Positions 9,160 to 47,494 are shown, numbered from the stretch's first letter. The stretch is DNA of 64,000 nucleotides from Octopus sinensis (GCF_006345805.1 NW_021832590.1:62001-126000); one strand, 5' to 3'. Translations and numbers: made by a program. The notes: generated from the letters alone by a model not told the origin.

Positions 9160-9608
9160 CATTGCCCTTGATCACTATTAACCAATTAAGGTCAGCCCCA
9201 CACAGCTGTTCTGCACAAATTCAAATAATTTGGAGGCCATCCACTCAAACTCTGGCTCCTTCCTGATTGCCTTATAGACTCCACTACACGTGAGTACTCT
9301 ATCAAATGACTGGTGAGGCAATACGAATGTAATTTGACATTATTTGCCAGTAAATTGGCAGCCCCGCCCTGTTCTCTGTCCAAGATTGTAATTGCGTCTT
9401 CAACGATCAGTCCATTATTCCTCAGGTCCTTAAAAACTGTTACTTGGACGACTTGATTGATCGAATCCTCCCTGACAACAACATCCTCCACAACGAGACA
9501 CCTCATTCCCTTTGTCCACGTGCCCTCGATTAATTTTTGTGTGCCATATTTCTTTAATTCCTTTCGTTTGAGGATCATTCCCTTATTAAGCCCGAAGGAG
9601 ACACACTA
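9160..9608 (-). pseudogene. UMPS: UMP synthase fragment (C-terminal half of OPRT plus start of OMP decarboxylase)
   Basis: ILKRKELKKYGTQKLIEG, CLVVEDVV, ILDREQGG, then in another frame ASKLFEFVQ...CVGADL; PRPP loop degenerate (VEDVVVRED); N-terminus and most of ODC absent. Confidence 0.75.
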
Positions 9609-9719
9609 TTTTGAAGACAAGAGAATTTTCACTATTTTTGAAAAAAGTAAATTTATTGTTTGTTTCTCTGTAAATTGTATAAATTATTACCATAACAAAT
9701 AATTTGGAAAAAAATAAAT

Positions 9720-10110
9720 TGTCATGAGAATTTCTTGGCCAAGCTTTACATCACCAATTTATTTTCCGTCAATATGGAGATTAACAGTCCACATTCTTAC
9801 AATACTTTTCACAAAGTTTGCAATCCAAACAGGTACTACAGAACAATTAATCACATGAAATAAAGAATTATAGTCAACAAAATCATATGCTTTTTTGATT
9901 TTAATCCAAGCAAAATATAGCTCATTTTCACACTCTTTATTTAGGCATTCGTTAACAAAGGTTTGCTCTAACAGTGTCTACTCGTACCAAGTTGATTGTT
10001 AGGAATTAAGCCGAGTGGATTTACGAACTCAAACAGTTAGCCATTAACACGCTTGGTAACTATCTTATAAACTATCTCCATCCATGTTATAGGGCGCAAA
10101 TCTTTTGGGG
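9720..10110 (-). mobile_element. Degraded RT, resembling RLE-type (R4/NeSL-like) elements
   Basis: AWIKIKKAYDFVD motif followed by a broken K.G..QGD-like region. Confidence 0.4.
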
Positions 10111-10319
10111 TTTCAAGTCATTTTTTCAGGGATTAGGTATGTTATCCTAGTATAAAACCAGCTTTTTAAAATCCCGTCTTTATTGATTAATCTTTAAATT
10201 TCGACACATAAAAATTTATGAAGAGATTCCAACCTTTTAACAAAAAAATTATATTTTTTATCACACCCAGATGGCTTCCAATCAAGGAGATGATTAATGA
10301 TACTCATTTTGTAAAATCT

Positions 10320-10650
10320 TCTCTTGTTTAGTTCAAAGCAAACATTATGGAATTCTTTCCTAGAGTTATACACAGCTAGTTGTTTTTTCTTAATTCTGAT
10401 AAATTATGCAGCAAAGATTCGATCCTCGAAAACTCGAAAGTCCCATTTAAGTTTCATGCGTCTACGACTAGCCCACCAACTTTCCATACGAACTACACAT
10501 ACAAGACACTTCAGGAAAATTCACAAACTTGATTCATCATTTGGTTGTATTTTTATTTGTTTTTAAAAGAGAGTGCAGTATTATGTCTTGTTTTTTGACA
10601 TTAAGAATGAATCTGCGGTTTATTTGTGCCAAAACCTTCAAACTAGTGAC
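10320..10650 (+). mobile_element. piggyBac-like transposase C-terminal remnant
   Basis: LWNSFLELY...KSHLSFMRLRLAHQL resembles the piggyBac C-terminal helix region. Confidence 0.4.
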
Positions 10651-10689
10651 CCAACATTCTTATCTGTGGTTTAATGGCCTATTTAAGTT

Positions 10690-43900: not shown

Positions 43901-46622
43901 GAGTATGATTGGGCGAATGTTGTTAAGAGGACCTTGCGGCTTGTTGGGTTTTTGGAGAGGAATTAGCGTTCCTTTCCCAATAGGCGGTATGGTATTTCCA
44001 TGGAACATCTCGTTCAGGAGATTTGTGATTATAGTTGAGATCTCCATTGGGGAGTACTTTATCAATTCACCGTTGATGTTGTCTGGACCCGCCGCACGGT
44101 TGTTTTTTAATTTTTTTATAGCCTTCAAAACTTCAAGGTGTGTTATTTTGTTGTTTAGATAACGTTCTTCACCCTCATCGAGAGCATCGGCCCTGCCATT
44201 GAATAGTATTTCGAAGTGGTCGGCGATTGTATTTACCATTTCGATTGGGTTTCCAATTGTTTTCCCATGTTCATCGTGCACAACCAGTTTTGTTTTCTGT
44301 TGTCGTCGGCGTAGTAGTCTGATGGCTGCGTACATTTGCGCACCATCCTTTAAGTCTTCAACTTCTGATATTCGAGAGTTTAATAAAGCTTTCACGTATT
44401 TAAGATTTTCCTTCTTGATTGTTCTCGATATTTTCCTACGTTCTCTTTTGAGTTTTTCCTTTGCCTCCTTGTCGTTGGTGTTTTCAATTTTCAGTTGGAT
44501 GGCTTTTTGTTTTGTTGCCATTTCGGCAACATTTGGATTCAATGGGTTTGAGTGGTTTCTGAATGCAGTCGTTCCAATGGTTTCCGTTGCGGCTTTGTGA
44601 ATAAGTTTTTCTAATATATCCCAGCTTTTGTTTGGGTCTTTTACCGTTTCTGTTACTTTTAGGTTTTCGATGATTGCCTGGGAGTATTTTTCCTTGGTAA
44701 CATCTGATGTAATCAGTTTTTCCACTGAGTATCTAATTCGGTTTGATTCATTTTCTTTTGAAAGAGGCGATCCAAAAATTCTTTTCAGTCTCAATCGTGC
44801 CACAATGACTTTGTGATCGCTCAGTGTAAGTGCCCCGCCATATGACCTGGCATCCAGCAATCGATGTTTTTCTTCTTGTCTACAGATGATATAATCGATT
44901 TGATTATAGATGTTGACGTACTCCCCATTTTTGTTTCTTCTAGTCCCGGTCCACGTGGTTTTATGACGTGCCGCATGAGGAAAGACCGTATTGCATAGCA
45001 GTAGCTTGAATATGCTGCAGAAGTTCACAAGCATTTCACCTGGTGCATTTCTTATCCCCCGTCCATGTCTGCCCATGAACACTTCTTCACCACGGCCTTT
45101 GCCTGCCTTAGCATTCCAATCACCGGCAATTAGTATAAGGAAGGATGTTTTTATACTCGTGTAGGTCTTTGATAGCATGTGATAGAAAGAGTCTAGTTCA
45201 TCCACGTTCTTCTTCAGTCTTCCACTTTGTGGGGCGTAGACATTTATAATGCTGATTATTCGATCCGTGTTGGTCAAAGGAGATAGTGAAGACATTATGA
45301 GGAGAAAGATGCTATCGACTGTTGCACTTAACAAACTGCGGACAACTTGGCTACGAAACCGCGAGGTTGGAACGGCCTTACGTGCCAAATTATACAATGC
45401 TTTTATTAAACCCATACTTTTGTACAACGGAGGAACATGGGGAATATCTGAGTCTGAATCAAAATCTCTTGATGCATTCCATAGAAGACAGTTAAGAATT
45501 CTTATTGGCATCAACTGGCCAAAGAAAATCAAGAACTCCACCCTATACAATATCTGCAACAGCAGACCCGTCAGTGTGGACATTACCGAAGCACGTTGGC
45601 GCCTATTGGGCCACATTCTAAGACTCGACCAGGATGTTTATGCTAACTGGGCAATGGAATCATATTACGCAAAGGACGAAAGATCTGCGTCCCGAGGACG
45701 CCCACGAAATACATTACCTATTGTAATCTCAAAAGAACTACAACGCGTTAAAAGACAACTGAAAAATGGAGACGACCTAGATACTCTCAGGAGTATAGCA
45801 TACAACCGCACATCATGGAAAATTATGACCGAAAAGATAGTCTCATATGTGGCACATGTGGGAACTTAATTAGTTTAAATTACATTATGTTCCTATGACA
45901 GTGCTAATAATAATAATAATAATAATCAAACTAAATTCAGTTTCGACAGACCAAACTTGATTAAAGCAGTGTCCGCTATTGGAGGGACCCATAACTTAGA
46001 AATGTCACAATTTAAAAGTTTCCAGAAGAAATTGACAATGTGATCGCAGTTTTCATCCCAAAAAACGGAAATGTTGCTTTTTTGGAACATATTTTTGGAT
46101 TTACCGGTCTGGAATTTACATTTTTATTTGTCACTTGTTTTGCTGTTATTTGCACCGTGGCCTTGGAGTCGGAAAAAAACATTTCGACAAAATTTGCCAT
46201 TAAAAAGCAGTACATTTTGAGATAAACTGACAGATTTTTGTCAGACTGGTCCTTTGATCCTCTTTGATCAAAATGTTCGGACAATGACACTAAAAAGATT
46301 CGACTTTCTTTAGTTTTAAACAAATTAAGGAACATTCTTTAAATAATTTGAAGACTTCTATGATGAAGCTATCCTTCAGTTGTTTTGATTGTCTAAAATA
46401 CACAGAATATTTTTCTTACGTAATTGTGCTTATGTAGCCGTCGAGAGAAAACGATTTTGCAGTTGCTGAATAGATTAAAAGAATTTGTAATTTACAGTGG
46501 AGTAGAAGAGGAAGACTTTTGCATTGAATAATGCTATCAACAGAGAATAGTGAGGGACGTGAATTGCTTATTAAATCGTCCTTTTTCGCAGATATCTCAA
46601 AATCCAACAACGTAGAATTCAT
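40940..46622 (-). pseudogene. NCAPD2: Condensin I subunit CAP-D2 pseudogene
   Basis: HIHDINAFVRVKVL, LHDKSTLVRKRGAQLLIAFLRNNPF, KQMILVQYL, EIIRRICDTEIV, LCESNIQLL..LMDRSPFP; in-frame TAA at 42679-42681, 2.7-kb RTE insertion, C-terminus missing. Confidence 0.85.
43248..45923. mobile_element. RTE retrotransposon with 5' inversion (43248-45278 minus, 45279-45923 plus)
   Basis: Minus ORF ends KKVGTLL and plus ORF resumes GDSEDI; (TAA)n tail; 12-bp TSD AATCAAACTAAA (43236-43247 and 45924-45935). Confidence 0.92.
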
Positions 46623-46697
46623 AACGAATCTAAAGCGGTATTTTATTTTAATTAAATATATAAATCACAAGAAATGTAATTTTAGTAATTAAAAATA

Positions 46698-46993
46698 TTA
46701 TTTTTTAGTCTTTAAAAATGGAAGATAACAACGATCAAACAAATCCTTTGCTGTGTTAGCTGCAACTTCAATTTTGGGGGTTTTATACGAAACATAAGGT
46801 TTGAGCTAAAAAAAGTCAAAAATAAAAAACCCTGAAAACCAGTCAAATCAGGAACAATAAAGTCGGGGATCATCTCAGGGACAGTCACTTTCTCTCCCGT
46901 AGGAGGGTCACCACACTTTTGTTGGCCCCCCTTCTGATCAACAATGAGATTTCAAACTAGACACAATTGGCTTATGTGTTCTAAAATCGGCAT
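46698..46993 (-). CDS. MRPL41: Mitochondrial ribosomal protein mL41 (short N-terminus; second splice donor 1 nt out of frame)
   Basis: VPEMIPDFIVPDLTGFQ / LKPYVSYK signature; 24-nt introns 46934-46957 and 46806-46829. Confidence 0.7.
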
Positions 46994-47062
46994 GATTTCC
47001 CACTCAGAAAGACCCCGAGTTTATTTCTGGGTATACCGTAACCAAATAAAAACAGCTTTTAC

Positions 47063-47494
47063 GTTAAAGTGGATAGACACAGGAATGACAATGTTTAAGT
47101 CAGACACTATTGATAGCAGCAACGCACACTCCAATAGCCCAGTACCCTTTCCGTTTTATTATTTCGTAAGCAGTGTTGTCATGTTTTTCCCATAGCTGTT
47201 AATAACGTCGCCGTGAAAACTGTAAATTTTGTTTCTATCATCCTGAGTCATTTCCAGGTAATTGAGAAGAACCTCACTGATCGAGGTGTACTCCACAAGG
47301 GAACTTGAATAAACAAACATGCCTACCGCTCGAGTCCCCGTGTTCCTCGATGATGGAGATGTTGAAGGGAGAAACTTTGAAATATTCGGACAACATAACT
47401 TGCAATCGAGAGGAGTCCAGCGAAGTTCCTGACCCGATTATTCGCGATTTGACGAGTCCACTCAACTTCCAAGTAACATAGGTTAATATGTCAA
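47063..47494 (-). pseudogene. LDH: L-lactate dehydrogenase pseudogene (middle and C-terminal part)
   Basis: [13 protein letters not shown]...[13 protein letters not shown]...EHGDSS|VPLWS...AYEIIKRKGY-WAIG; frameshifts, small deletions, N-terminus replaced by RTE remnant. Confidence 0.85.

Follow-up and report, generated by a model that had tools for sequence, protein, structure and literature searches.

Decaying fragments of normally indispensable genes in a transposon-riddled stretch of a probable dicyemid genome

A 38-kb transposon-riddled stretch of the 64,000-nt sequence analysed here (the window) contains, beside a few working genes, incomplete and broken remnants of four or five that are normally indispensable. 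DNAH10, NCAPD2, UMPS and LDH are all recognisable and all carry lesions, as the original prediction had held, and each survives only as a fragment whose missing half was absent from the whole window in motif and profile searches; MRPL41 is probably a fifth relic, damaged too. Judged from their sequence, these pieces appear to be non-processed pseudogene fragments of resident spliced genes, now encoding nothing, since they combine homology to a gene family, disabling lesions that splicing cannot bypass, and retained introns. The feature is of an ordinary kind, in an unusual genome. In our best reading, which we hold with modest confidence, the genes belong to a decaying DNA-level duplicate whose redundancy we infer, with working counterparts elsewhere in the genome.

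Table 1. Gene relics, transposable-element (TE) sequences and neighbouring genes in the window
Feature	Position	Strand	Remarks
UMPS relic	9181-9605	-	C-terminal half of OPRT domain; human OPRT 2WNS residues 88-178, E 5e-20
DNAH10 relic, main part	16340-20300	+	human residues ~3440-4104; 5 in-frame stops, at least 6 frameshifts, 2 large deletions
IS1595/ISXO2-like DDE transposon in DNAH10 coding sequence	16560-17880	-	PF12762, E 6e-12
hAT-like fragment in DNAH10 coding sequence	18449-19200	+	dynein alignment broken between residues ~3659 and 3667
Unclassified insert in DNAH10	20.3-22.57 kb		integrase-like fragment
DNAH10 relic, distal piece	22600-22870	+	human residues 4116-4185, E 6e-11; further frameshift, 6-aa loss
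RTE-type LINE after last recognisable DNAH10 piece	22950-25760	+	endonuclease and RT reading frames
ZER1, apparently intact	30772-33061	-	introns 44, 25, 23, 23, 25 nt; PF22964, E 1e-40
NCAPD2 relic	40890-46622	-	start codon to ~residue 1000; at least 7 tiny introns kept
TAA nonsense codon in NCAPD2	42679-42681	-	replaces conserved Gln of CAP-D2 (X versus Q in three Ycs4 structures)
RTE insertion in NCAPD2	43248-45923	+	(AAT)7 tail; flanked by 12-bp duplication AATCAAACTAAA
MRPL41, probable fifth relic	46701-46880	-	PF09809 profile 37-70/97 only (central conserved part)
LDH relic	46885-47540	-	LDH-A residues 132 to ~320, E 5e-33; at least 3 frame breaks
5'-truncated RTE fragment	47640-48060	+	reading frames of RTE C-terminus at 47674-48017
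NAA10, complete	48079-48612	+	158 aa; introns 33 and 23 nt; PF00583, E 1e-20

Gene remains and the lesions they carry

The main DNAH10 relic finds its best PDB match in human DNAH10, the heavy chain of inner-arm dynein I1/f (residues 3461-4104 of 4589, E 1.3e-103), and its score of 350 bits, against at most 144 bits for DNAH2, DNAH5, DNAH1 and others, assigns it to this family. Its reading frame is interrupted by stops at 16454-56 (TGA), 16526-28 (TAA), 18188-90, 19738-40 and 19902-04 and has lost about 17 and about 100 amino acids in two deletions; in a splice-path search that allowed GT/GC-AG introns of 15-150 nt, at least six, and by one count nine, of its junctions could not be joined by any intron. 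The relic also retains four tiny introns (33, 22, 24 and 23 nt), so that several of the supposed frame changes are introns of 22-33 nt while the unspliceable junctions stand as lesions. The stops and deletions claimed for this gene were recovered, the first two stops and that of NCAPD2 at exactly the positions named (16454, 16526 and 42679), whereas the TE-bearing interruptions number four rather than three. The dynein residues on either side of the IS1595/ISXO2-like element are contiguous. Beyond the distal piece, nothing more of DNAH10 was found up to 27300.

The UMPS relic is more succinctly described: its PRPP loop (~9462-9491) is degenerate, the TSG triplet reading VRE (EDVVTSGSS versus EDVVVREDS), and it ends at three consecutive stops at ~9180. 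The Pfam Pribosyltran profile found no match in the relic, and neither the N-terminal OPRT motif nor the core or motif of OMP decarboxylase occurs anywhere in the window. The alignment to OPRT thereby bears out the degenerate loop and the truncation that had been proposed.

The LDH relic lacks the NAD-binding half, whose place, just upstream of NAA10, is filled by a 5'-truncated RTE fragment. Three of its junctions have no splice path and its tail contains three stops; two 23-nt introns are intact (47495-47517 and 47304-47326), and a third of the same length has dead splice sites (47172-47194). These introns presumably lie at the intron positions of vertebrate LDH-A (~codons 140, 198, 237 and 278). 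The 5' loss postulated for this gene is thus real and so are the three unspliceable junctions, but two of its alleged frameshifts are clean 23-nt introns. For MRPL41, a mitoribosomal protein, linking the exons would need a GG splice donor, and the "exon" placed upstream lies partly within the LDH tail. LDH, MRPL41 and NCAPD2 follow one another in a tight, native-looking order with spacers of ~80 nt, as expected of a copied or ancestral block.

NCAPD2 is far less eroded than LDH and DNAH10. A Cnd1_N domain (PF12922, E 8e-16, 58.7 bits against a cut-off of 27) and similarity to Ycs4/Cnd1 (Ycs4 residues 336-975; the PDB matches are Ycs4 chains only) identify it as condensin I CAP-D2 rather than condensin II CAP-D3. 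The C-terminal Cnd1 HEAT domain occurs neither at the locus nor anywhere else in the window, which is consistent with truncation and not with another family; the C-terminal third of the gene is gone and LINE fragments (36797-40860) stand in its place. No splice path was found around the TAA codon. The copies of the target-site duplication AATCAAACTAAA at 43236-43247 and 45924-45935 bracket an RTE that sits 7 nt into the exon following a 26-nt intron (45931-45956), and whose upstream part is inverted, head to head with the 3' part, the two parts abutting in element coordinates (...KKVGTLL followed by GDSEDI...). The inverted upstream part, the simple-repeat tail and the 12-bp target-site duplication resemble the twin-priming insertions of human L1, although this element belongs to the RTE clade of LINEs and comes from an invertebrate, and the mechanism is deduced from structure only. 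Stop, insertion and truncation were therefore all seen as foretold; several frame changes read as lesions, conversely, are introns of 22-33 nt (the retained introns, at least seven, measure 22-31 nt), and the assertion that the peptides stay close to canonical sequences fits DNAH10 and LDH but fails for NCAPD2.

Genomic background and preserved neighbours

Introns throughout the window are ultra-short GT-AG introns, mostly of 22-33 nt: of 19 canonical ones located, 14 measure 22-29 nt and the other five 31, 33, 33, 33 and 44 nt. Introns mostly of this size, with signals reduced to GT(a/t)...AG and positions conserved with other animals, are equally found in Dicyemida and Myxobolidae (PMC13644364; PMC6543705; Ogino et al. 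2010 as cited in PMC6543705), and introns below 30 nt are known only from myxobolids and Dicyema (PMC13644364); most introns here are below 30 nt and have the same minimal signals. The GC content is ~37 %, to be set beside the 36.7 % GC, 49 % repeats and abundant LINE ORF2 copies of D. japonicum (PMC6736024). Intron size, GC content, LINE load and a young ciliary-dynein relic, from which it follows that the lineage is ciliated or was so until recently, favour a dicyemid mesozoan, for instance Dicyema, as the most probable source, with a myxobolid myxozoan less likely. Protein and contig collections yielded no match to the window's proteins above 72 % identity, and the AP-2 mu piece found no close relative among 1.84 billion representatives. 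The ultra-short introns are the genomic background and not the finding; they account for part of the supposed frameshifts, while many of the other lesions cannot be spliced out.

These same introns bear on whether the relics are real. Sequencing or assembly errors, contamination by host DNA (cephalopod or fish) or processed retrocopies might simulate gene decay, and a few frame breaks do fall in homopolymers (CCCC at ~42925, T7 at ~41890, GGG at the MRPL41 donor and an A-run at 18120); yet we find such an artefact scarcely credible, given that no errors are seen in four neighbouring genes or in TE reading frames 535-799 codons long, and that many lesions are stop substitutions, deletions of 17 to ~100 codons or TE insertions with target-site duplications. 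Since the relics keep the lineage-typical 22-33-nt GT-AG introns, as do the intact neighbours, they are neither retrocopies nor host DNA. An origin as processed pseudogenes was likewise rejected, introns being present and three relics being contiguous in a compact gene order.

The neighbouring genes provide the contrast. Over ~3.5 kb they carry no lesion, against 3.5-35 expected at the density of the relics (1-10 per kb), which suggests that ZER1, NAA10, beta-CA and AP2M1 are still kept open by selection. All four had been reported to splice cleanly. NAA10, with 69 % identity to animal NAA10, is complete with its two introns; a profile search recovered the entire beta-CA domain; and the visible part of AP2M1 does splice cleanly, though it is very divergent. 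ZER1 has an open frame and canonical splice links, matches profile positions 80-343/356 of PF22964 as well as the ARM domain of human ZER1, and its central 300 nt are not part of the verified frame; a profile search of the locus did not recover the first 79 positions of the profile. The intact genes had been described as interleaved with the broken ones, which is true of ZER1, located inside the broken stretch, but not of NAA10, beta-CA and AP2M1, which lie to its right.

Why the genes decay

The region between ~9 and 47.5 kb would once have been gene-dense DNA that lost the protection of selection and that point mutations, small indels, larger deletions and transposon insertions are now taking apart. 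The segment, or at least the LDH-MRPL41-NCAPD2 block, may be a DNA-level duplicate, with redundancy as the most likely reason for its decay. We prefer this reading because CAP-D2 and MRPL41 are essential and sit in that compact, native-looking block; we know of no animal that manages without either, and intact copies elsewhere are therefore very probable. Fractionation pseudogenes that follow segmental or whole-genome duplication (angiosperm WGM-derived, PMC12241627; Paramecium; teleosts) are likewise intron-bearing remains with stops, frameshifts and deletions, interleaved with retained genes in a preserved local order, but the relics described here are heavily truncated and TE-invaded, the lineage is not known to be polyploid, and no sister block or intact paralog was seen in the window. 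The fractionating duplicate of the original prediction is consequently supported in part, by the non-processed remains, the native-like block and the essential genes, but not in its polyploid-subgenome form, nor in those "frameshifts" that are introns: a polyploid subgenome is unlikely because duplicated BUSCOs amount to only ~3 % in a dicyemid (PMC6543705) and large-scale duplication is no known feature of these genomes.

Inactivation seems to have been staggered, LDH and DNAH10 being far more eroded than NCAPD2. Lesion density is ~6-10 per kb in the former two (~10 in LDH), compared with ~1-2.6 per kb in NCAPD2, whose lesion count is uncertain because several candidate frameshifts have alternative canonical splice paths and there is no close reference. 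This inequality implies that the genes did not die together, which does not fit easily with a copy that never worked from the outset. That the pieces are gene fragments captured by TEs or copied in small partial duplications, and were never complete or functional here, is accordingly a doubtful proposition: all the relics are incomplete and border on transposon sequence at their ends, the window lacks the missing halves, and the LDH(3')-MRPL41-NCAPD2(5') block has both ends within genes, but later TE-associated deletion accounts equally well for such ends, pieces of one block should decay equally whereas LDH is several-fold more eroded than NCAPD2, and NCAPD2 retains its start codon and ~1000 codons with few lesions. 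No terminal repeats or Helitron- or Pack-type boundaries were seen around the pieces.

The main rival to a redundant duplicate, and a tentative possibility, is ongoing reductive evolution, whereby the broken genes would be sole copies (unitary pseudogenes) in a TE-rich region under inefficient selection. Dicyemids have shed about half of the usual animal gene set, and true ongoing loss is a real alternative for DNAH10, UMPS and LDH because gene sets of this type are so reduced. A parasite living in host urine could plausibly dispense with inner-arm dynein, de novo pyrimidine synthesis and LDH; the compact, native-looking order, the asynchronous decay, the low fraction of duplicated BUSCOs, a BUSCO score of ~76 % and the drastic reduction of dicyemid genomes to 5,012 genes with incomplete pathways (PMC6736024) also speak for it. 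Comparable unitary pseudogenes of parasites and symbionts (Demodex mites, PMC9218549; Mycobacterium leprae, the bacterial textbook case) are conserved metabolic or structural genes decaying at native positions while the gene set shrinks, but CAP-D2 and MRPL41 are not of that dispensable kind. No animal with mitosis and mitochondria is known to live without CAP-D2 or a mitoribosomal protein, and it would be remarkably coincidental for 38 kb to hold four or five recent unitary losses, each independent of the others. A mixed version would have DNAH10, UMPS and LDH as unitary losses and other copies of NCAPD2 and MRPL41.

The local TE build-up with a satellite array, and pseudogenes beside a few preserved genes, also recall the decay of Y or W chromosomes and supergenes; unlike these, the region shows no sign of sex linkage or suppressed recombination. 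In dicyemids, which are self-fertilising hermaphrodites, a degenerate haplotype would be exposed.

Gene disappearance at the level of single loci

Dicyemids and myxozoans are, to our knowledge, the most reduced animals, and we know of no description of how their genes disappear at the level of individual loci. Here the process of gene loss is visible, with nonsense mutations and small indels, splitting by TEs and then truncation by deletion, next to neighbours that stay intact. There is also a warning for annotation, namely that in such genomes a jump in frame of 22-26 nt is usually an intron and not a frameshift.

Should the relics be redundant, they would show that a genome supposed only to shrink has also undergone segmental duplication and fractionation; should they be sole copies, functions usually held indispensable would have been lost. 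We consider it very unlikely that NCAPD2 and MRPL41 are sole copies, so that a dicyemid-type animal would be losing condensin I CAP-D2 and a mitoribosomal protein together with inner-arm dynein, UMP synthase and LDH; we know of no eukaryote without condensin I. If that were nonetheless the case, the window would offer a direct view of core cell machinery undergoing reductive evolution.

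Lesions in the broken genes

The loss of coding capacity that the original prediction described in this region is real, and the positions it assigned to the broken genes are accurate; the nature of individual lesions, however, had in part to be revised. For the DNAH10 relic, the stop-free pieces match residues 3461-4104 of the human protein (E 1.3e-103), other dynein heavy chains scoring far lower, and an additional piece matches residues 4116-4185. A splice-path test, in which adjacent conserved blocks could be joined in frame through one or more GT/GC-AG introns, each 15 nt or longer, found no path at nine junctions. 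The stops and deletions that had been claimed were recovered, the latter amounting to ~17 and ~100 codons, but the sequence is split by four transposon-bearing inserts rather than three. The first ~3440 and last ~400 codons are absent from the window, and a protein search with the DNAH10 pieces returned only fragments, at identities no higher than 72 %. Of UMPS, only residues 88-178 of the OPRT domain are left on the minus strand (E 5e-20), in a state that a Pfam search of the relic no longer recognises. Both the truncation and the degenerate PRPP loop bear out the earlier description: VRE replaces TSG, and the ancestral Ser-Gly codons (TCA GGG) are still legible in a shifted frame, which argues for two compensating indels (-2, +2) within ~12 nt and not for serial substitutions. 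The frame closes with three stops near 9180.

Coordinates and properties of the relics, intact neighbours and repeats
Feature	Position (strand)	Intron lengths (nt)	Lesions per kb	Details
Satellite array	5462-8664			3.2 kb; 95-nt unit, 33.8 copies, 95 % matches; ~0.5 kb from the truncated UMPS relic, on its downstream side
UMPS PRPP loop	9462-9491 (-)
DNAH10 relic	16.3-20.6 kb; 22.6-22.87 kb (+)	33, 22, 24, 23	~6	In-frame stops 16454, 16526, 18188, 19738, 19902
IS1595/ISXO2-like DDE transposase	16676-17764 (-)			Within the DNAH10 relic
NCAPD2 relic	ATG (plausible) 46622 (-)	26, 22, 22, 24, 22, 31, 26	~1-2.6	TAA stop 42679-81
RTE in NCAPD2	43236-45935			2.7 kb, with a 12-bp target-site duplication
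MRPL41 segment	46701-46993 (-)			Intron 46806-46831
LDH relic	Introns 47495-47517, 47304-47326 (-)	23, 23	~10	Third 23-nt intron 47172-47194, both splice sites lost
ZER1		44, 25, 23, 23, 25
NAA10		33, 23		Complete, 158 codons
Further gene	51300-53130 (-)			Ig domains (Pfam Ig_3, E 4e-8)
pogo/Tigger transposase ORF	57250-58356 (-)			Apparently intact; DDE_1, E 1e-36
AP2M1, visible part	63347-64000 (+)	29, 22		Open
Intact neighbours, ~3.5 kb			0

The NCAPD2 relic, which encodes CAP-D2, retains Cnd1_N (E 8e-16) and a Ycs4 match spanning residues 336-975, and the stop, insertion and truncation attributed to it all hold as certain lesions: a TAA stands where a conserved Gln is expected, an RTE lies 7 nt into an exon that is preceded by a 26-nt intron, and the C-terminal third is lost, with LINE fragments in its place. 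A ciliate code, in which TAA would read as Gln, is ruled out, since long transposon and gene ORFs stay open under the standard code. The frame is probably broken again near 46330, 43035, 42925, 42000, 41890 and 40950; some of these sites have alternative canonical splice paths, and all are treated as candidates. The RTE consists of an inverted upstream segment, 43248 to ~45250 (-), head to head with a 3' segment, ~45249-45923 (+), and carries an (AAT)7 tail, a structure like that of a twin-priming insertion; its ends were fixed by the target-site duplication and not by comparison of copies, the two RTE copies compared belonging to different families (73 % identity over 110 nt). A protein search with an NCAPD2 exon gave zero matches, and a weak CHMP3-like match in the Lys/Glu-rich linker, 41268-41413 (-) (E 2.5e-5), is probably spurious, the same nucleotides matching in three frames.

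At the LDH locus, which aligns to LDH-A from residue 132 to ~320 (E 5e-33), two of the "frameshifts" in the original prediction proved to be perfect introns; the gene is broken nonetheless, as the splice-path search left three junctions without possible splicing, the tail holds three stops, and the 5' half, with the NAD-binding part, is missing, its site occupied by an RTE fragment. MRPL41, unclassified in the original prediction, looks damaged as well and would probably make a fifth pseudogene: of its profile just the central conserved part, positions 37-70 of 97, is present, its single intron requires a GG donor, and its putative first exon shares nucleotides with the LDH tail in a different frame.

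Intact neighbours and the source genome

The neighbouring genes had been described as splicing cleanly. NAA10 is complete, beta-CA spans the full Pro_CA profile with the zinc ligands retained, and the visible part of AP2M1 splices cleanly. In ZER1 the exons are long and open, the C-terminal domain is recognised at E 1e-40 and every C-terminal intron splices in frame, as judged by anchor-to-anchor links; ~300 nt in mid-gene, however, are left out of the splice model, and the first 79 positions of the C-terminal domain profile were not placed in any frame. ZER1 is also the sole neighbour truly inside the broken stretch. AP2M1 is at best 35-39 % identical to AP-2 mu (ticks, bats, Fasciola, corals) when the exact exon is compared with 1.84 billion representative proteins, a spread of matches that does not place the lineage, and its usually invariant IYELLDE motif reads INLILSE; an open frame at such divergence implies that selection is acting, hence a very fast-evolving or paralogous copy and not a pseudogene. 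It could be a divergent paralog, and the window's lineage is said to have expanded endocytosis genes. Separately, the further gene at 51300-53130 carries cysteine-rich W-x-x-W repeats of thrombospondin-type-1 look by eye, in which Pfam recognises no TSP1 domain, and has a C-terminal hydrophobic segment.

The setting is AT-rich (GC ~37 %) and crowded with RTE and other LINEs, hAT, pogo, IS1595-like DDE elements and Helitron-helicase fragments; an Rfam search of the window returned zero RNA families. Frame changes within conserved proteins usually coincide with a GT...AG intron 22-33 nt long and with minimal splice signals (examples are 48338-48360, 47304-47326, 42495-42516 and 63799-63820). A ciliary dynein that is still recognisable implies a lineage ciliated now or until recently, and myxozoans are not known to be ciliated. 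Among animals, introns this short are on report only from myxobolid myxozoans and Dicyema (PMC13644364; PMC6543705); the D. japonicum genome has 36.7 % GC, 49 % repeats and numerous LINE ORF2 copies (PMC6736024), and the LINE content of Thelohanellus is reported at just 0.07 %. From the introns, the composition and repeats, the LINEs and the dynein relic taken together, we infer that the window stems from a dicyemid-type animal. Nothing near-identical to its proteins occurs in the collections queried, a composite query of six of its genes matched mostly long NAA10 fusion proteins without any species signal, and an exact look-up of four ORFs and the spliced NAA10 met no record.

Origin of the decay

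Several trivial origins of the relics are ruled out: retrocopies by the presence of introns, host DNA by introns of the lineage's own unusual size, and assembly noise both by the flawless state of transposon frames as long as 799 codons and of ~3.5 kb of neighbouring genes and by the many substitutions, multi-codon deletions and transposon insertions with target-site duplications. The lesion densities indicate that the neighbours are under selection, that the relics died recently on the timescale of the lineage, and that they were not all inactivated simultaneously. LDH, MRPL41 and NCAPD2 still follow one another head to tail, separated by ~80 nt or less, in what looks like a native compact arrangement. 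To our knowledge no animal has lost CAP-D2 or MRPL41, and working copies of both are therefore very probably present elsewhere in the genome, in which case this block would be a redundant DNA-level duplicate undergoing decay. This is essentially the fractionating duplicate that had been proposed, a reasonable but unproven interpretation; its polyploid-subgenome form is made unlikely by the small share of duplicated BUSCOs published for one dicyemid (PMC6543705). A serious alternative is that DNAH10, UMPS and LDH have truly been lost, in a parasite already without half its gene set. It is also possible that the relics are partial duplicates, dead on arrival, with which their truncated ends agree, but LDH and NCAPD2 have decayed to different degrees inside one block, which fits this poorly.

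The feature is a group of neighbouring non-processed pseudogene fragments within transposon-rich DNA, a kind already known, and its moderate interest derives from its setting in the genome of a parasite with ultra-short introns. In such genomes, gene finders and human readers alike will take the tiny introns for frameshifts.
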